This document shows, in pieces, positions 1,932 to 19,893 of a stretch of DNA of 30,569 bases. A program made the translations under genes and the position numbers. The notes below the pieces were generated by a model. The model worked only from the letters and a program-made list of their open reading frames with translations. It made no database searches and was not told the DNA's origin. This stretch comes from Zygophlyctis sp. KS116 (taxonomy: Eukaryota > Fungi > Chytridiomycota), in assembly GCA_054661495.1 (NCBI GenBank), contig BAAFSQ010000104.1:1-30569 (forward strand). Reading direction: 5' to 3'. Every line of letters starts with the position of its first letter. Positions within the stretch are counted from its first letter, which is position 1.

Positions 1932-4449
1932 TTACATTTTCCTCTTTTTAAGTGTATGATCTGATTGAGGAATTTCATCAAGACTCGATCGAACAAATTC
2001 AAGGGGAGTTTCTGACGGCTTGTCCGTTTTGAGGTTAATCGCCATTTTAACTTTTGCCTTTGAGCGGCACACTAAATTTTCTTCTTCATCATCGGGATAG
2101 TCGACAAGTTTCTTTACAGGAGGTGCGGCTTCTACTGGGGATTCTTGGATTTCATTAACTTCCTCGTCTATACCATTAAAGTATGATTCTTCTTCTTTTT
2201 CAACGTCCCAACCAGTTCGTTGGACAATAGGGACTCTTGCTATAACTTGACTACTTATTATTTAAAAATAAATTCATACTCTGTAGAGTTATCATTAACT
2301 GTGGTAGATGTGTCAGCATTTTGTTCATTCTTGAGAATCAAACCCCTAAAAACTACAGTATAATCAAGTGACTCCAATTCATTTTTTCTGCTAGCTAAAA
2401 TGTTAGATATAAGGGGCCGAATGTTTTCCTACATATAAATATTTCAAAATATTACTTTTCTGATAAATTCAAAAAACTCTAGGCATGCAGAGTTCATTAA
2501 ATTATTACACTTTTTAGTTCCAAGACAGAAATCAAATACATGATTTAATACATCATTTTTCAAAATTATTCTAGTGTAAAATTCTTCTTTAGCCCCAACA
2601 CAAGTTCTAAATACTCGTAGAGCGGCTGAAATTAATAAATAAAAAATTTACCAATTCTGAGAAATGATTCTTTAGATAATAATAACAGTAACAATTTCTT
2701 GACAATACCACCCATGAAGAAAAATTTACTTCTAAATTGATGAAATTTGACCATGAATGAAAATAATTCACAACTAAGAAAACATATATCTACTAATGAA
2801 GACTCCATTTCAAGAAATTTAGTTCCATCTAACCGTTATATAAAGTAATTACCCTTTCTCGTTGAAATCATAACTTCATCCAACGACATGATTGGCTGAG
2901 AGAGTTGCGATAGATTTTTCTCGTAGAATAGCGTGAGAAAATCCTCTGCTTCTGATGTGTGTTGTACAATTCCTTCACTAACTGCGTCTACACGAACAGT
3001 ATCAATCATCATTCTAATAATTTCTGAAAGTTGTGATCGAAGCCCAGAATCAGGCTCATTGATAAACCTTTCTACAACAGTTTCCATCAATGTTTTTTGC
3101 ATTTGCTTTGATTGTGCCAAGCAGAAAGATCTTACCAATGACGATTCATTTTCAAGAATATTACTTAATAATGAAATTATTGCTATTCTAATTTCAATAT
3201 CAGGATCTCCAATTGTGTATTCAAAAATAGCAAAAAGTCCATGGCTAGCAAGAGATCTAAAAAACTCTACTTTAGACTGAGCATGTAGACTTTTAACAGT
3301 CGTAGACATTTCATGTAAAAACATGATGACATCCTTCCTCTTTTGGGAAGATAAATTCTCTTCTGATAATATCGCAAATACATGCGCTTGAAAAGTCTGA
3401 TCATTTTGTATAAACGCAATAATTTCTGTTTGATTAAAAAATGCAATTGAGCTAAGAGAAGAAAATGTCTGTTCATCTAAAATTCTGGCCAACGCAACAT
3501 CCTTTAAGAATTGTACTCTGTATGTTTGTATTATTTTGTAAGTGATTTCTGGACTGTTAAATTCAACAACCTAAATTTCACTATAAACCTTTATTACCTG
3601 CTTAAAATGTGATTTTTGACTTAAATGTTCTCTATAATCAGCCTTTATATGAGGATATTCTTTATCATCTAATTCTTGTAAGTTGATCATAAATTACATT
3701 CTAACATTCCCAACACATTTATAAATTTATCATCTTTTAAAATAATTTCATACAATCCAGTATCATTCAATAATACTATCTTTTTAAACCTTGAATTTCA
3801 TACAAATCATTCTCATTATATCTCCTAGTATATATAAATCTCCAATATTTTCCAAATCTTCACAATCATTAAAAACCTTGAATAGTTTTTCAAGAAAATC
3901 CTAAAAATTATTTGTTTTTAATTACAGACTTGATTAAATAATGAACAGTCTTATTTCTCCCTTGAAAGCTTTTGGATGCATCTTCTAAAAAACGAGATAT
4001 ATCTGGTAAATTTGATAATTCTGGGTCCATAATATTCCACTCTGACTTGTAATCATCCATTAAAAATGCTAATAATAATTTTAAATCAAAATACCATCTG
4101 TGGAGAGAGGTAACTGATCTATATCATGTTTATCAGCCCTCATTCTCTTTTGGGCTTCTTGAATCGAATCCCAAATTTCGTTACAACCGTTGATGTCCTG
4201 AAAACTTAGAGCCAACTCTGTTCCGTCCGGTTCGGTCCAGACGATGAGTGTCTCCTGTTGCCGACTGTAAGAATTAAAGTCTTGCCTGACGCTTGAATTC
4301 ATCAATAGTCCTTCAACGCTAGGATCTTCTGGTTTGATTATAATACAATTGACTTCCTTTGCCTCTACCCATTCAACCGAAACAGTTCCAGTCCCCTTAT
4401 CGACCCAATTAGAATCAGAATCCAGCTCATAGACTTTGACTCTAAACAT
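1932..4449 (-). CDS. PSY2: Protein phosphatase 4 regulatory subunit 3 (PP4R3/SMEK/Psy2), 10 exons
   Basis: N-terminal EVH1-like RVKVYEL..WVDKGTG..RQQETLIVWTE..LALSFQ..GC.EIW, then the SMK-1 region (TYRVQFLKDVALARILDE) and C-terminal KLVDYPDDEE. Nine introns of 24-29 nt restore the frame; stop TAA at 1932-1934. Confidence 0.93.
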
Positions 4450-4548
4450 TTTTTATGGCAAGTGAGAGGTTTACTGTGAGGAGTTGGTGTCAGTTAACTG
4501 ATGATTCTATTACAAACGTAAAACTAAAGTATGCAAATATGTCAGAGA

Positions 4549-5574
4549 TTATAAATAATCTGATAAATGATAACTGGCTAAAATCCGTGACTCTTCTTCT
4601 CCTCCAGTTACAAACCTTGGATTACAAGTCTCAAAAGATCCATCACTTTGCATATGTTTGTATAAACATGAAGTTCCAAAAGGGCATGATCCATTTCCAA
4701 AATTGAAATGTTTACAATTGATTTTAGAAAGTTGAGATTGATAATTTGAGACTATAAATGATTTTGTAATTTCATCATCTGGCCAAACAGTTGAAGGTGT
4801 TATGAAAAAAGTTATTGATCTACATATAGGACATGTTTTTGATGTAGAAACTGCTTCTTTACTTCTCCAGGTTCGTATACATTCTAAACAGACGCAATGT
4901 TCACATGATAATAACCCAAATCTTGCATCTTTCTTATTTTTGACAAGTTCCATACAAACTACACATTCCATATTTGAATCTGTCAAGGTTTTAATCTTTT
5001 CTTTTAGAGATTGACAAGTAGAAAAATGTTCTATTTTTTAGAAAATAAATATACCCTGATACTCTTCAATACTTCCTTGAGGATGTAATACTTTTCTATT
5101 ACATAAATGACATTCTAAGCCATGTTTGTACTTGCAATCTTTTCCAAATCTGCAATAGTCCTTGAAGGGGCATAATGGTGTACGATCATCAATTGGAACA
5201 AAGGGTTCAGTTGGCAGTATGTGAATTTCTCCATTATATTCAGCATTAGAATCAGCCTTTGATTCTTGGACTGATAGATTAGAAACTGCATTAGTTTTCG
5301 CCATGTCTGCATACTTTACTTGCACACTAGTTTCTCTTGAAATACTAGAATCGTTGGACTGGCAAACTGATCTGGGCACCGATCTAACCGGTTTGATCGT
5401 TTTAGTTGCTGATTTCTTATTGAGTTTAATGTGCTTGAGCGCACACTTATTTCCGAATCTACAGTCTCCTGTTTGATAATAAAGACAAATACCAGAGTCA
5501 TCATGGACAAAAGGACATTTACTTCCCTTGGTGCATTGCCCAAGAGAATAAAATTTACAACTAATTGAGCTCAT
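4549..5574 (-). CDS. MKRN: Makorin-like CCCH zinc finger / C3HC4 RING E3 ligase, 2 exons
   Basis: Three N-terminal CCCH fingers, a Cys-His motif, a RING (CVVCME..RFGLLSCEHCVCLECIRTWR..CPICR) and a C-terminal CCCH (CKHFNFGNGSCPFGTSCLYKH). 24-nt intron at 5031-5054. Confidence 0.9.
5571..5574 (-). other. Overlapping stop/start ATGA (UTP7 stop / makorin start)
   Basis: Minus strand reads AAG AAA TGA GCT. The TGA ends UTP7 and the overlapping ATG begins MSSISCKFY. Confidence 0.85.
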
Positions 5575-7043
5575 TTCTTATTAAATCTGTCTAATGCTTC
5601 TCTAGGCTTCTCCTTTTTCAAAACCTTTGACTCTAGAGCTGCAAGTTTTTCAACCCTCTTTGAGTCCTTGACATTATTTTGCTTTCTGAGATATCTACGG
5701 AGTGATGATGATTTCCCCTTCATTTTTCTCTTGATCTGGACAGTCTTACCATCACCAATATCTTGTTTTTCTTCTAATCTTTCCTTTTTTAGAACGTGGT
5801 TAGGAGCATCATCAATATTTCCAATTATATTTGGATCCAATGTAATCATTTCAGGTGCAAGTTTCTCTAATAGAGAATGTACTTCAGATTCTTGACGTTG
5901 TTTTGAAGTTTGATAAGGATTTGCTTCCATAGTGTCAAAGTTTGGTTCACCTGATCCAGGAATTATTAATGAAGATACACCTTTTGAATGGCCTAGTCCA
6001 AGGACATCTTCCCAAGGACAAAAGACTAAATCTGAAACTCTTGATCCTTCTTGAATATGCTTCATATATGCATCAGATTGTTTTTCTTTAAATATATTTT
6101 TCCATAAAGAGATATTAGGACCATGTCCAACTGCAAGAATACCTTTTTGACTGATAGATAGATGAGATGCAGGAGAAGGAGTATAATAATGATCAATGAG
6201 CTTAAATGTACGAATATCCCAAATTTTAAGTTGAGAATCTAATCCAACTGTTGCCATATAATTACCAGATAAATCAATTTTCAAATCCTGTATAGGACCT
6301 CTATGACACAACATTTTGACTAATGGAGATGACATACTTGGACTCCAAAGAGTTACAGTTCCATTATTATGTCCTAAATGAATTACTGCATTCCAAGGAT
6401 TTTGAGTCATTGACCTAGTAGGACCTAATTTAGTTCCATGTTCTGCAACTATTTTACCAGTTGAAGTATCTTGATACTTTAACCATCCTGTTTTACCACT
6501 TCCAACCAATAAAAAATGCCAATTTAAGAATTCTAATCTAGTAACATCTATAAAATCCTTTATAGAATGAATTTCTACTCCTTGATTATCATAAATAAAA
6601 GTATATTTCTTTTGTGCAACAGCAAATAACCCAGAATTATGACACCAAGAAACATCATGAATTGATTCTCTAGTATGAATTTCTGTACTTAATTTCCCTG
6701 ATTTCCAATCAAAAGCCGCAACATGACCTTTTTCACCTCCAATCAACATATATCTTGAATTTCTAGTATAATCCATTCTATAAGAACCAAAATCCAAATC
6801 CAACGTAAAAGATTTTTTAATAGAATTTAAATCTAGTGATTTACAGAGTTCTACTTGAGAAACTTTCCAAGTTTTTTCCATTTCATTTTCTGGCTCCAAG
6901 ACTCCAGATTCATTCAACAATAAATGCTGAGAAAGATTTAATTTCTCTATAGATTTCTTGAATTCCTTTTCATTCTTTTGAAGTTTAGATTTAAGTTTCT
7001 TGTCTGATATTTTCTTGAATGATATCGGCCTTGATCTTTCCAT
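5571..7043 (-). CDS. UTP7: U3 snoRNP WD40 protein Utp7/WDR46, intronless
   Basis: 490-aa ORF with WD40 repeats and the BING4CT motif (PGSGEPNFDTMEANPYQTSKQRQESEVHSLLEKLAPEMITLDP). Confidence 0.95.
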   Translation of the reverse strand: MERSRPISFKKISDKKLKSKLQKNEKEFKKSIEKLNLSQHLLLNESGVLEPENEMEKTWKVSQVELCKSLDLNSIKKSFTLDLDFGSYRMDYTRNSRYMLIGGEKGHVAAFDWKSGKLSTEIHTRESIHDVSWCHNSGLFAVAQKKYTFIYDNQGVEIHSIKDFIDVTRLEFLNWHFLLVGSGKTGWLKYQDTSTGKIVAEHGTKLGPTRSMTQNPWNAVIHLGHNNGTVTLWSPSMSSPLVKMLCHRGPIQDLKIDLSGNYMATVGLDSQLKIWDIRTFKLIDHYYTPSPASHLSISQKGILAVGHGPNISLWKNIFKEKQSDAYMKHIQEGSRVSDLVFCPWEDVLGLGHSKGVSSLIIPGSGEPNFDTMEANPYQTSKQRQESEVHSLLEKLAPEMITLDPNIIGNIDDAPNHVLKKERLEEKQDIGDGKTVQIKRKMKGKSSSLRRYLRKQNNVKDSKRVEKLAALESKVLKKEKPREALDRFNKK

Positions 7044-7140
7044 TTTTAAAATTATTTTAATCAGTGCAACAAATTTTTTTTGTCTGCCCTAAGCTGTGAA
7101 CCTTGCCCTTGTACATTGATTGCTTTTTGACTTTTGAGAA

Positions 7141-7500
7141 ATGTCTAGAGAAAAGATTGAATTCTCTTCAACTACTCCTTCATTCATTAAAAAACTTTTG
7201 GAATCTCCTGTACAGAAACCAGTACCTAAAAAAGAACCCGTAGATGATGGACCTGTGATTGTAAATGAAACTCAAGAAGCTATTAGCCAAGTCCCAAGAG
7301 AAAATAAAATAATAGAAATGGGAGCGCAAAAGTTGAAGAAGCAGATCAAATCCAAAAACTCAAATTCTAAAAATACCCTAGACATTAGCACTACAAGTGG
7401 ATATCAGTCTGGTGGCAGATCAGGTAGACTGTCAGGGAGCAAGATTGAAAAAACAAGAAAATCTATAAAGTTGCTCTCTTTTTCCGACCAAGAAGAGTAA
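7141..7500 (+). CDS. DUF4604 / KIAA1143-like small protein
   Basis: 119-aa ORF with N-terminal PSFIKKL, central DDGPVIV and C-terminal KLLSFSDQEE, a motif pattern typical of this family. Confidence 0.7.
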   Translation: MSREKIEFSSTTPSFIKKLLESPVQKPVPKKEPVDDGPVIVNETQEAISQVPRENKIIEMGAQKLKKQIKSKNSNSKNTLDISTTSGYQSGGRSGRLSGSKIEKTRKSIKLLSFSDQEE

Positions 7501-7567
7501 TGGAAGTTACATGTTTAATATGTAAATCTTATATCCATTTAAGATAATTTTACCGTTGCAATTTTTA

Positions 7568-8788
7568 ATGAAAACGTTTTACCGGAGAGATCTTCCGTCT
7601 GCATTATCATCATTTACATCAAGCAATGGGAAGAGACTATTTAAACAAGCATTGGCACAAGGAAACGCTGAAATTTATTTTAATCTTTCTGGAAACTTTG
7701 TAAATCAGTCTGAACCAGCATACTGTTCGCTAGGGTCATTGGTCATGGTCCTGAATGCTCTTGATATCGATCCAGGCAAAAGATGGAAGGGGGTCTGGAG
7801 ATGGTATTCAGATGAATTATTAGAATGTAAACCTCCAAAAGCACATATTCTGGAAAGGGGGCTCAGTTTAAGTCAATTAGCGGCTCTGGGAAGATGTAAT
7901 GGACTGCAAATTACTGCAAAAAGAGCAGATCAGGTCTCGTTTGAAGAGTTTAAAAGTGATTTATTAGAATCAGTTCAATCAAATTCAAAATATTTAATCT
8001 CAAATTTCTCTAGAACTTATCTTGGTCAGACTGGTGTTGGTCATTTTTCTCCTGTTGCTGCTTATGACTCTATAGATGACCAAGTATTGGTTCTTGATAC
8101 TGCAAGGTTTAAATATCCTAGTTACTTTGTCAATATAAAGGATTTATATAATGCAATGCTAACAGTTGATGAAGAATCTAAATTGTCTAGAGGTTATCTG
8201 ATCTTGTCTAAAGGAGATCTTAAACCAATGTCATTAATTAAACTAAATCATTTGGAACATTGGGATTTAAAATCTCTATTAAATGTTTTTATACCTCAAG
8301 AAATATCAAGGATTCAAAAAAAGGAACAGTTGATTGCTCTACTTTTAAATAACTTCATTAATGAATCGCAGTCTTTTCTTAATATTTCTCCTGGAGTAGA
8401 TCTTGCCGGAACAGGATTAAATAAGGAATACATTAATGATTTACTTAAATTGGACAATCAGATTTTACAGCATCCATTACACAAGATAATTCAGGATGTA
8501 GTAAAGCAAGACTCAAGTTTAGAGTCAAAATCTAAACTCTTCAATTCAAAACATTTACCGTTGGAATCTGGAATGTTTTCATTATTTGCAACTATTACTA
8601 TATTGTGCATGCCATCATCAATGTATGCGAATTCTCCTTTAAAGAATTGGATTATAGATCTGACTAGAATTCCCAAAACTTTTGGCCTTTTACTCGACGA
8701 GACTCAAAGATTATCAGAACAGATTGAGATTATTCTAAACAAGCATTGTACTTGCAATAATAAAAAGGAACAATCGATCCATCTTTAA
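7568..8788 (+). CDS. PCS1: Phytochelatin synthase (glutathione gamma-glutamylcysteinyltransferase), intronless
   Basis: First ATG in frame gives MKTFYRRDLP. Catalytic Cys (QSEPAYCSL), His (GHFSPV) and Asp (LDTARFKYP) are present, plus DPGKRWKGVWRWY. Confidence 0.93.
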   Translation: MKTFYRRDLPSALSSFTSSNGKRLFKQALAQGNAEIYFNLSGNFVNQSEPAYCSLGSLVMVLNALDIDPGKRWKGVWRWYSDELLECKPPKAHILERGLSLSQLAALGRCNGLQITAKRADQVSFEEFKSDLLESVQSNSKYLISNFSRTYLGQTGVGHFSPVAAYDSIDDQVLVLDTARFKYPSYFVNIKDLYNAMLTVDEESKLSRGYLILSKGDLKPMSLIKLNHLEHWDLKSLLNVFIPQEISRIQKKEQLIALLLNNFINESQSFLNISPGVDLAGTGLNKEYINDLLKLDNQILQHPLHKIIQDVVKQDSSLESKSKLFNSKHLPLESGMFSLFATITILCMPSSMYANSPLKNWIIDLTRIPKTFGLLLDETQRLSEQIEIILNKHCTCNNKKEQSIHL

Positions 8789-8804: not shown

Positions 8805-9539
8805 ATGAGAAATCTAAGCTCATTAGCGATAACTGTAGGAACAGTTGGAAATTCATTAAATTTAATTTTTACTGGACATTATGGGGGAACAGCTAATAGT
8901 ATTTTATCAGCGACAACAGTCATGGGCTTATTAATGTTGGGCGATCTATTATCATTTGAAAACTCTTGGAAGAACTTTAAGATTCTAAAGCTGAACGGAT
9001 ATTCTGCTCTCCATGTTCTATCTTGTATATTCTGCTCTTATTTGCTAGCTATTCCTGGGACCCTGATAATGACTGAGATATTTATTGGAAACGATGGGCG
9101 GGTCGTACCATATTTCAACTTTTCTCTTTGTTTATATGTTACAATCTTTATGATCATATCAGAAATAGGATTCTCACTGGGTCATATAATACTACACAGT
9201 TATCTCCCTGGATTACATAGGATGCATCACTGTTGCATTCATGCATCATATCTAACAAACTTTGTATTTCATCCGTTGGATTTGATTTTGGAGTTTGGAA
9301 CTCCAATTCTAATGATTCTCTTGGTTAATTCCATTTTTTTCAATGATGATTATGCTGCATTATGGGCTATATCTATATTGATTTCTTGGTATGCATTGGA
9401 TCATGATGTGTTTCTTCAGTTTAAGCATACAAATCATCATCGTTTTGTTTCAAGTTACTATCATGCTTATTTAGGACTTAAAGGGGATTTCATTCAAGAT
9501 AATGTTAGAAAACTCGTGAAAAGGATTGACAAGAATTGA
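8805..9539 (+). CDS. Fatty acid hydroxylase / sterol desaturase superfamily membrane protein, intronless
   Basis: Hydrophobic helices with di-iron His boxes HIILH, HRMHH and HTNHH, plus FHPLD. Confidence 0.8.
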   Translation: MRNLSSLAITVGTVGNSLNLIFTGHYGGTANSILSATTVMGLLMLGDLLSFENSWKNFKILKLNGYSALHVLSCIFCSYLLAIPGTLIMTEIFIGNDGRVVPYFNFSLCLYVTIFMIISEIGFSLGHIILHSYLPGLHRMHHCCIHASYLTNFVFHPLDLILEFGTPILMILLVNSIFFNDDYAALWAISILISWYALDHDVFLQFKHTNHHRFVSSYYHAYLGLKGDFIQDNVRKLVKRIDKN

Positions 9540-9541
9540 AT

Positions 9542-12500
9542 TTAGTGAGCACTATATTTTAATACAAGGAATGCCATGATTCTATAAAAGAGAAACAGAA
9601 ATACTGCTATTCCAGCATAAAATCCCTTTTGATTTTCATCAAATGGAAAGTTTTCATTTGAAGTTAAAACTGATAAAACCTGAGATCCATTTGTATAAAA
9701 GCAAAGCTGAGATGCAACTTCTTCAGCTGTACACTCTATTATAGTATTTGAGTTGAATTCATTAACAGTAATTAATCGTGTCAAGTATGGAATTGGTGAA
9801 ATATAGTTTAGTCTATCCAAGAATAAAGGCATTTTTGATGACATCAAGCCAGACATTACAACAAAAATTCCTAAGAGAGAATTAGTAATTGAAATAGAAA
9901 ATCCAATATGATCAATCAAGGAGCAAAACGCTATTCCGATGCTTTCTCCAGTAGCAACAAGTAAGAATACTGCATATGTGTCGCTGAAATACGTTTCAGG
10001 GGAGAGATTTAATCCAACTAAAACTACGGCAAACAATGTATAGATCAAAGAGCTGATGATTGCTATAGGAATCTATAAATTAATCAAGTTCTATCACCTC
10101 AATTAAGCAGTAAGCGAGAAAATATGAATCTACAGAATAGATACCATCTGCTCTTTCACGAAAAAGAATATTTTTTTCTGCAGGAAAAACTGCGACGCAA
10201 TTAAGTAGACTAAACATTATAAATTGTAATAAAATACCCAACAAAAAAAATCGCCAATGTTTGCTGTATGACACCAATCTTGTTCTGAACTGAAACCTGT
10301 CCATTCCCTTGACGAGCATAGAATAGAGCTTGAATAACACCTAGAGATACAACCTGCATGATTCTAGAAAAAACTAATATAGGCTGCCGTCGAGTATTCA
10401 AAATACTTCGGCTAAATAGTACAGGAAAAGCAATCGTAAAAGGTGCCTGATTCCTCTGAATTTCTTCATTTGAGTCGGGGATCGAACTTTCAGATGCACT
10501 GACAAGACTAACTGGCCTTTCCTCTTTAATAAATTCATTCCATCTGTATATTATCGCTTCCACTCTTTTCCTTGATTCACTCTCTGCCTCAGCAGTGCGT
10601 AAATCTATGGAGCAGATGTCCAGCAAATAGTCACTTGGATTTGTATGATTTGGTAAGATGTAGCCTAAAGAGCTAAAAAAAGAGAATATATCTACTCTTG
10701 GTCCTAGCATAATTAATCTATCTAATTTTACCTGAATATGCGACTCTCCCGCCGTTGGTTAAAATCATCAAGTTATCAAATATTGGAAAAATGTCAGATC
10801 GAGGTTGATGAATTGAACATATGATCGTTCTTCCAGCTTCAGCCATATTTTTCAAGGATATCATAATATGATGGGCTGTGAATGAGTCTAATCCAGAAGT
10901 GGGTTCATCAATCACTAAAATACTAGGATCAGTTAAAATCTGGACTCCGATACTAAGCCGTCTCTTTTCACCACCACTCAAACCTTTTAATGCTTCATTA
11001 CCAACTACAGTATCAGCACAATGGCGAAGTCCTAGCATCCCAAGAATCTCCTCCGCTCGCACTTTTTTTTCTTCTTCTGTCCATGATTTTGGGAGTCTTA
11101 GCCTGGCTTGATAGTACAGCGTTTCTCTCGCAGTAAGTGCAGGAAGTAAACTTGCATCGTCTTGCCGGACAAAAGCACAGATCTTAGTTATTTCAGAAAG
11201 TCGTTCTTTTTTCATGCCATCAAACAACATTTCTCCAGACTTTTTTAATCGTACCATTGCCCCGTAATTCAGACTACGAGCAGCCAATATAGATAAAAGA
11301 GTACTTTTTCCTGTTCCAGACCCACCAATTATTATTGAGAGAGATTTAGAAGGGAACCGTGCACAGATATTATCCAGGAGAATTTTTCTATCTTCCTTTT
11401 TACCAGTATAAAGCTTCTTCCGTATTAATTCAACTGTTAAATTCTTGAGTTCCACATTTATACGGGCAGCTTTGGTTGTTTTTGCGACACTTTGCAATCG
11501 ATTATGTGCTTTCAAGCTGGAGGCTGACGAAGACGAAACATCTTTGGCATGAGCAACAACCGAATTGGGTCTAATCAGCAAAAATACAGCAGCCACCACC
11601 CAAAATACTAAGAAAATGATGCATAGCGCTAAAAGTGGTTCATAAAAATCATCTATCTTTATCCCCAATTGCTCCAAAATAATATTCCCGTTACACTGAG
11701 GTGATGTGGAGATACAAGAATATGTATTATTGGAGAATTCATTGGCAGCAAGAATTCTATATTGATATGTTAGAAATGATATTTTTTGAATCCAACGAAC
11801 GTAAACCGGCGCAGAATCAAGCTGTTGAAAAAAACCAGTGGAAAATGAGAAAAACGTATATAAACCATTTCCTAATAGAGATGCTAGAGCAAAATCTCGA
11901 AATATGCTAATACAAAAGTACGAAAATGTCACCACAATAAATTGCACAGCAAGGTTAGCGATAAAAAAGCGAAAAAAATGTAATCCAAGTTCATCAGTTC
12001 TAAGTCCAAGCATGAAATACTAAATGTTGGATAAATATTATCATACCATTATTGATGAGTATATTAGAGGAAATAATATGTTAAATGGCAGAGTAGACAA
12101 AAATTGCGCCATCATGTAAGGGATAGTGCCATACATGTTATCTGCTTTTTCCCGATCAAACACTTTCATATCAAGAGATAATTTGTAGATGATAAAAATC
12201 AACATGAGATACGTTTGCATAGACGCAACTATGTACAGAGCAGATCTTCTCGAAAGAACTCCTGGTAATGATTCATCAAGATTGTAAAAAATCGCTCCCA
12301 TTACAGAAGCAATAAATAGAACTTCGAAAAGATTCCCCCAAACCGCCAAGTTATCTCGCTTAAGGTTTGTGAGCGCTCTTCGTAAAAGAATCCATGTTTG
12401 CTGAAATCCATTAACATTGACCGCTTTTTTCGAAATAAGCAATTCATTCTCTTGTTCATCATCTTCTGGCTCAACCTTTCCAAGTTTATTGCTGGAAATA

Positions 12501-19200: not shown

Positions 19201-19891
19201 TTTACAATGAATTGATGAAGAAAAATACCTCTTATGAGGAAAGCAAGGCTCAGCTTGATAGGACAGTTAAATTGTTGGAATTTATGAGTTCTACAGTCAA
19301 AAACAGGGAAGATATTTGGATAAAATTTCGTAAAACAATATCAGTGACTGCTAAAACGAATTTCCGTGATTTCATGAAAAAGAGAGGATACAATGGAAAA
19401 CTTATCCTGGATCATGATAACCAAGCTCTCAATCTTGTTGTAAGAGATGTTATATTGTAATTTGTAGGTCCATATTGAAGACAGCTCCAAATCTGCCTCT
19501 AATGATGAAAATAACAATTCGGATAATGATCCAAAGAGTCTTTCTGGTGGAGAAAAAAGTTATTCAACAATTTGTCTTTTACTCTCACTTTGGGCATCTA
19601 TGCGAAATCCGTTTAGAGCTTTAGATGAATTTGATGTTTTCATGGTAATTTATATACACATAAATACAAAGGATGCAGTCAACCGTCGAATCAGTATGAA
19701 GCTCCTCATAGAGAACTCGCGTGAAGAGTCTTGTCAGTATATATTTATCACACCGCAAGACATGAGGTAAGAAATGATTAGCTAATGATAGTCATATCAA
19801 GGGAATAGATATGGGAAATGACATTCGTATTCACAAATTAAATGATCCTGAGAGGGGTCAAACCACATTAAGCTTTTCAAATAATAACTAA
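16210..19891 (+). CDS. SMC6: Structural maintenance of chromosomes protein 6, about 17 exons
   Basis: NFMCH, Walker A GRNGSGKS, QVDNPLAVLTQD, hinge PVGPIG, signature LSGGEKSYSTICLLLSLW, Walker B/D-loop LDEFDVFMDAVNR, C-terminal IRIHKLNDPERGQ. 16 introns of 23-31 nt (first 16300-16322, last 19767-19791). Stop TAA at 19889-19891. Confidence 0.93.
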
Positions 19892-19893
19892 TG
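19889..19893 (+). other. Overlapping stop/start TAATG (SMC6 stop / PRO2 start)
   Basis: AAC TAA TG: SMC6 TAA is 19889-19891 and PRO2 ATG is 19891-19893. Confidence 0.85.

Follow-up and report, generated by a model that had tools for sequence, protein, structure and literature searches.

The locus described here lies on a 30.6 kb contig (C104; 30,569 nt), the whole of which is referred to below as the window, in a 12.7 Mb assembly of 1,175 contigs with a G+C content of about 34%. The host is an ultra-compact chytrid-like fungus that has retained spliceosomal introns, and a search of sequencing runs also found the sequence of the window in freshwater metagenomes. Three genes follow one another on the minus strand in the order UTP7, makorin and PP4R3, and the first two share four nucleotides, ATGA, in which the start codon of makorin is interlocked with the stop codon of UTP7 (Table 1).

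Table 1. Features of the UTP7–makorin locus; positions are those of the window unless a relative is named.
Feature	Position	Strand	Description
UTP7/BING4 CDS	7043..5571	-	single exon, 490 aa, stop TGA 5573-5571
Last 10 UTP7 codons (REALDRFNKK)	5603-5574	-	synonymous conservation raised
AATAAG	5582-5577	-	inside the 38-nt block, 8 nt before makorin ATG
ATGA junction	5574-5571	-	makorin ATG 5574-5572 over UTP7 TGA 5573-5571, read directly
Makorin-like exon 1	5574-5055	-	520 nt, 173 codons, three CCCH fingers (Pfam zf-CCCH families)
Makorin intron	5054-4980	-	75 nt, GT..AG, phase 1
Makorin-like exon 2	4979-4549	-	431 nt, RING, C-terminal CCCH and stop (zf-RING_2, zf-C3HC4, zf_CCCH_4)
RNA contig X18	5408-5589		makorin 5' end and 15 nt of UTP7 CDS, then ends
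RNA contig X19	5432-5582		makorin 5' end and 8 nt of UTP7 CDS, then ends
UTP7 tail intron of relatives	L002:1496-1523, L003:1362-1387, L005:1470-1495, L006:21-46, L008:1615-1641		

The upstream gene encodes UTP7 (BING4), which we take to be a U3 snoRNP protein of the SSU processome. Its ORF, which spans 1,470 nt and contains 33 ATG triplets, matches the BING4CT (E 3e-40) and WD40 propeller families of Pfam, and it has the layout expected of UTP7, in which a WD40 propeller precedes BING4CT and a basic tail that closes with ALDRF. The protein is 55-81% identical to fungal UTP7 proteins; the best named matches are from chytrids (55-57%), while the closer ones (65-81%) are all metagenome sequences. 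Across fungi, UTP7 ends in ALDRF followed by 0-10 residues, and since the protein from the window stops three residues after this universal motif, its stop codon is the natural one. The same tail sequence is found in a 98% identical strain (L009/L010), and the ALDRFNKK terminus agrees with both the relatives and the fungal consensus, for which reasons a stop produced by faulty assembly, or by an intron overlooked at the 3' end, was rejected. Loss of the stop codon would lengthen UTP7 by 84 codons. On its other side, the gene is flanked by a divergent 119-aa ORF without a Pfam match (7141..7500), the ATG of which lies 97 nt from that of UTP7, so that the promoters and leaders of both genes must share the gap at 7044-7140. 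A phytochelatin synthase gene (PF05023, E 1e-77), two genes from UTP7, occupies positions 7556-8788 of the plus strand.

The order of domains predicted for the downstream gene, with N-terminal CCCH fingers, a C3HC4 RING and a C-terminal CCCH finger, is that of makorin and identifies it as such. Its two exons, which were searched against Pfam separately and never as a joined sequence, add up to 951 nt (520 + 431) and preserve the reading frame, and the relatives likewise show separate exon-1 and exon-2 makorin ORFs. Exon-1 ORFs from metagenomes are 54-98% identical to that of the window, and the one at 59% was named 'E3 ubiquitin-protein ligase makorin' by JGI. Both gene identities had been proposed in the first-pass annotation, and are borne out by the Pfam matches and by the relatives.

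Along the minus strand the junction reads ...AGA TTT AAT AAG AAA TGA, which confirms the 4-nt overlap that had been reported from the sequence. The first-pass annotation had further argued that a later start of makorin is implausible because the first CCCH finger begins at residue 6 and the next methionine lies beyond two fingers; indeed, the first finger spans residues 6-25, placing the ATG five residues before it, and the next in-frame methionine is residue 91. From the opposite side, an in-frame TAA 6 nt upstream, which makes an earlier start impossible without splicing, upholds the ATG at 5574 as the true start. In the alignment of the six lineages for which DNA is available, the makorin protein is conserved precisely from Met1 onwards (MSS..CKFYSLGQC), and upstream of it conservation is confined to the UTP7 frame. 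A mis-assigned start, whereby makorin would begin in an upstream spliced exon, at a later codon or at a non-AUG codon and the overlap would not be true, is thus extremely improbable: although the AAG immediately before the ATG might in principle serve as a 3' splice site, an upstream exon or a later start was rejected on the grounds of the TAA, Met91 and the conservation from Met1 onwards, and the makorin of the outgroup L004 likewise opens close to its first finger (12 residues before it), after a spacer that contains stop codons. Both gene ends are genuine and the overlap is real.

Related loci were gathered by a word search and by exact-protein look-ups of UTP7 and makorin exon 1; a metagenome scan with the exon-1 alignment for further relatives found none. 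The first-pass annotation had proposed checking whether the overlap is conserved in related genomes, and the ATGA proved to be retained in six lineages with DNA: the species of the window (with its 98% identical strain), L002, L003, L005, L006/L007 and L008. A seventh place, without DNA, shows an identical 16-nt offset between gene calls. In all lineages with DNA the order is UTP7, makorin, PP4R3, and the junction takes the form RFN(K/R)K-TGA interlocked with ATG-AG(C/T). Fourfold-degenerate sites of UTP7 are identical among the lineages at a frequency of 0.49-0.54, compared with 0.42 expected from composition. Judging by these near-saturated sites, the lineages, which are uncultured, are deeply diverged, and the overlap is ancient. 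The two neighbours differ strongly in rate: between L008 and the window, UTP7 is 84% identical and makorin exon 1 just 54%.

Gene callers place the end of UTP7 either 16 or 90 nt upstream in the relatives, an artefact of failing to splice out a short intron (26-28 nt, phase 0, GTAAG/GTAAT...TAG), which lies about 95 nt before the UTP7 stop in all relatives and is 41 nt long in the outgroup. Introns of 26-28 nt are unusual in fungi. In the lineage of the window this intron has been lost precisely, its equivalent site lying between positions 5655 and 5654.

The outgroup L004, the UTP7 of which is about 63-65% identical, shows the same UTP7-makorin order with a different junction: UTP7 ends in ...ALDRFKR-TAA and is followed by a 145-nt spacer containing AATAAA, after which makorin begins. 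The presence of this order together with a spacer suggests that the adjacency of the two genes is older than their overlap, which probably arose through loss of the spacer; L004 thus points to a derivation from separate units, as is characteristic of compacted genomes. In both of the cultured chytrids that were checked, Polyrhizophydium and Spizellomyces, makorin is absent from beside UTP7. The spacer between makorin and PP4R3 ranges from 99 to 420 nt across the same lineages, a variability that fits a locked junction amid fast-changing spacers. Since each of the interlocked bases is needed by one or both genes, conservation of the ATGA is expected even without a coupling function.

Conservation at the nucleotide level is raised immediately upstream of the makorin start. 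A 38-nt block around the ATGA is shared without any change by the window, L002 and L003, and among codons with an invariant amino acid in five lineages, seven of the ten in the UTP7 tail are invariant as codons, against 79 of 260 in the body of the gene (Fisher P 0.013), a signal that is based on ten codons and hence on a small sample. Such raised conservation is expected if the codons also carry a signal for the neighbour, and the UTP7 tail could be a candidate makorin leader or core promoter, a candidate 3'-end signal of UTP7, or both.

The packing of genes around the junction was assessed over 230 kb of the genome (the window plus 200 kb) from ORFs rather than gene models. The smallest gaps were -4, -4, 7, 7, 7 and 10 nt (range to 30 nt) between tandem ORFs, -26, -6, 2 and 11 nt (range to 26 nt) between convergent ORFs and 23-97 nt between divergent ORFs, and minimal spacers are accordingly alike in the three orientations. 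The tight convergent and divergent gaps imply that start sites lie close to the ATGs and that 3' ends lie within neighbouring genes. In the window, for example, a 244-aa plus-strand ORF ends at 9539 and a 168-aa minus-strand ORF at 9542, and with 2 nt between them each 3' end must fall in the other gene. Close tandem neighbours also occur on the minus strand, where TAG, 7 nt and ATG separate 431-aa and 166-aa ORFs at 10711-10717, and 27 nt separate 221-aa and 431-aa ORFs at 12014-12040. The other stop-start junction of the first-pass annotation, and the first that it had listed, is a TAATG at 19889-19893 between the SMC6 stop and the PRO2 start; it is present, the ATG at 19891 opening a 450-aa ORF, and the SMC6 frame is putative.

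Within the same 230 kb, three ATGA junctions that open an ORF of at least 60 aa were found after 164 ORFs of at least 120 aa, while the mean at offsets +3 to +60 is about 0.43 per offset, which by hand calculation gives a Poisson P of about 0.01. The excess is modest and the sample small; ATGA accounts for about 2% of tandem ORF pairs and is not the modal class. Its pile-up fits an absorbing boundary for spacers that are shrinking. The ORF pairs comprise 136 tandem, 29 convergent and 28 divergent cases, but exons of one gene inflate the first figure, and strand clustering was for this reason dropped as an indicator of operons. A positional profile ahead of 79 long-ORF ATGs showed a weak preference for A at -1 and -3 and yielded no promoter or initiator motif. 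From the ATGA geometry, the first-pass annotation had drawn the hint of a genome-wide coupling mechanism. This suggestion is not sustained in view of the spacer-bearing outgroup, the lack of a known reinitiation cis-element (see below), the equal tightness of convergent and divergent neighbours and the small share of ATGA among the same-strand ORF pairs sampled.

RNA from the locus comes from four lake metatranscriptome runs, each of which contains small parts of the window and the contigs of which were placed on positions 4000-7500. Seven short contigs were obtained from the four runs, two of them in UTP7, at a depth of 2-3x; DNA carry-over is possible. None of these seven low-depth contigs bridges the junction with at least 31 nt on each side, and none crosses the makorin intron. 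Two contigs from different studies, X18 and X19, cover the 5' end of makorin and stop shortly inside UTP7 (Table 1); although contig ends do not define transcript ends, these are weakly consistent with transcription of makorin starting shortly within the tail of UTP7.

We consider it most probable (roughly 0.65) that UTP7 and makorin are two overlapping transcription units brought together by compaction, with the start site of makorin inside the UTP7 tail and no coupling device. In the ancestral arrangement, UTP7 and makorin would have been separated by a spacer of about 150 nt, in which the poly(A) signal of the first gene and the promoter of the second were located. In the compact clade, deletion of the spacer would then have gone on to the point at which stop and start codons became interlocked, whereupon the overlap, all four bases of which are needed by one or both genes, would have been locked and so have persisted. 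The makorin mRNA would start no more than a few tens of nucleotides upstream of its ATG, in the last codons of UTP7, and cleavage and polyadenylation of the UTP7 mRNA would take place shortly inside the makorin CDS; both positions are inferred. What was observed directly is the ATGA itself and its retention in the relatives, the spacer-bearing outgroup, the tight spacing in every orientation and the lack of any known reinitiation element. Such an arrangement of transcripts is reported for compacted genomes of microsporidia and nucleomorphs, and overlapping transcription has precedents in compact microsporidia, as described in passages of PMC3486916 that cite Williams 2005 and Corradi 2008.

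A capped bicistronic UTP7-makorin mRNA, on which ribosomes that terminate at the UGA reinitiate at the overlapping AUG, is an unlikely alternative, whether the process were mediated by the 40S subunit or by the 80S ribosome; it could also be part of a wider practice of the clade where genes meet in ATGA or TAATG. The ATGA provides the close proximity of stop and start codons that is expected of a termination-reinitiation bicistron, and the geometry is that of viral and retroelement termination-reinitiation. Retention of the junction in six lineages, the small excess of ATGA in the 230 kb and the failure to find a makorin-specific promoter motif among the 79 gene starts would also be in keeping with a bicistron. 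The same retention, however, is equally expected from the mere locking of a shared stop and start, and the AATAAA in the 145-nt spacer of L004 points to units that were separate ancestrally. Moreover, in all of the well-studied cases known to us, reinitiation after an ORF as long as 490 codons requires special cis-elements. A TURBS-like UGGGA is absent from the 100 nt upstream of the junction in every lineage, and the last exon of UTP7 showed neither a conserved RNA structure (consensus fold of -0.75 kcal/mol without covariation) nor unusual stability (z 0.01 for the single sequence), which led us to reject membership of the TURBS or pseudoknot type of reinitiation. Leaky scanning is excluded by the 33 ATGs of the UTP7 ORF. 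The convergent and divergent neighbours, for which coupling is no explanation, are just as tightly packed, and the RNA contigs include none that bridges the junction and two that end 8-15 nt upstream of the makorin ATG. In favour of a bicistron, passages of PMC11952965 and PMC11291117 describe reinitiation as most efficient at zero or very short spacers.

Two-gene transcripts might also be produced by read-through as a by-product of weak termination, with makorin protein made solely from its own shorter mRNA. Such a pattern has been reported for compact microsporidia, according to the same passages of PMC3486916 (citing Williams 2005 and Corradi 2008), and RNA contigs cover UTP7 and makorin at similarly low depth; no bridging contig was seen, however, and read-through is best viewed as a variant of overlapping transcription units from which the present data cannot separate it. 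As an explanation in its own right we regard it as quite unlikely.

Distinctly doubtful is the broader proposal that ultra-compact freshwater chytrid-like fungi, as a clade, routinely express neighbouring nuclear genes through two-gene mRNAs with element-independent reinitiation at ATGA and TAATG junctions, UTP7-makorin being one conserved example. The proposed behaviour would resemble a latent 80S reinitiation of yeast, in which a second cistron normally goes untranslated and an element-independent 80S route is inducible and works best without a spacer (PMC11952965). It is on account of this inducible route that the idea of coupling survives, albeit with a low probability.

If overlapping units formed by compaction are the correct explanation, the locus offers a clean and datable case in which the loss of a spacer drove nuclear genes into a locked stop-start overlap, and would indicate that, in a fungus that still splices introns, coding sequence can be made to take in the signals for promoters and 3' ends. 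Were reinitiation instead to take place, UTP7-makorin would represent a conserved cellular bicistron in which, with no known cis-element, translation resumes downstream of a long ORF, and would bear on the strictness of the rule that eukaryotic ribosomes translate a single ORF from each mRNA. The locus contributes a spacer-bearing outgroup, depth of conservation and thin RNA evidence, and the unambiguous ends of both genes make it suited to a simple test.

Among known systems, bacterial translational coupling has the four-letter overlap in common with UTP7-makorin. Bacterial coupling relies on retention of the 70S ribosome or the 30S subunit, with polycistronic mRNAs as the norm and ATGA as the modal class of junction, whereas here ATGA makes up only about 2% of the same-strand ORF pairs in the sample. 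Viral and retroelement termination-reinitiation displays the same stop-start geometry after a long upstream ORF. The AUGA and UAAUG junctions of this kind include those of calicivirus VP2, with its TURBS, influenza B BM2, Helminthosporium victoriae virus 190S and the UAAUG of the hypovirus CHV1 (PMC2699510; PMC5972666). The viral systems depend on an upstream UGGGA complementary to 18S rRNA or on a pseudoknot; UTP7-makorin possesses neither, and its bicistronic RNA is hypothetical.

The polycistronic loci of green algae (PMC11291117) and of mushroom-forming fungi (bioRxiv 10.1101/012542) likewise place nuclear ORFs side by side on one strand, with junctions that overlap or are very short, and at some Auxenochlorella loci the stop and start codons overlap (PMC11291117). 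The algal loci, however, are translated by leaky scanning past a short first ORF that has a weak start context and few AUGs (PMC11291117), a mechanism that cannot apply to an upstream ORF with the length of UTP7 (1,470 nt) and its 33 ATGs.

Compacted eukaryotic genomes are also comparable. In the microsporidia Encephalitozoon cuniculi and Antonospora locustae and in nucleomorphs, spacers are similarly described, in passages of PMC3486916, as being near zero in all orientations; there as here, the starts and ends of genes are forced into their neighbours, in genomes derived from ancestors with normal spacers. Unlike these, the present genome is that of a chytrid-like fungus, amounts to 12.7 Mb and carries spliceosomal introns, and its overlapping transcripts are putative. 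A further distinction is that the coding sequences themselves are interlocked here, by 4 nt, and that this interlocking has been kept across six lineages.
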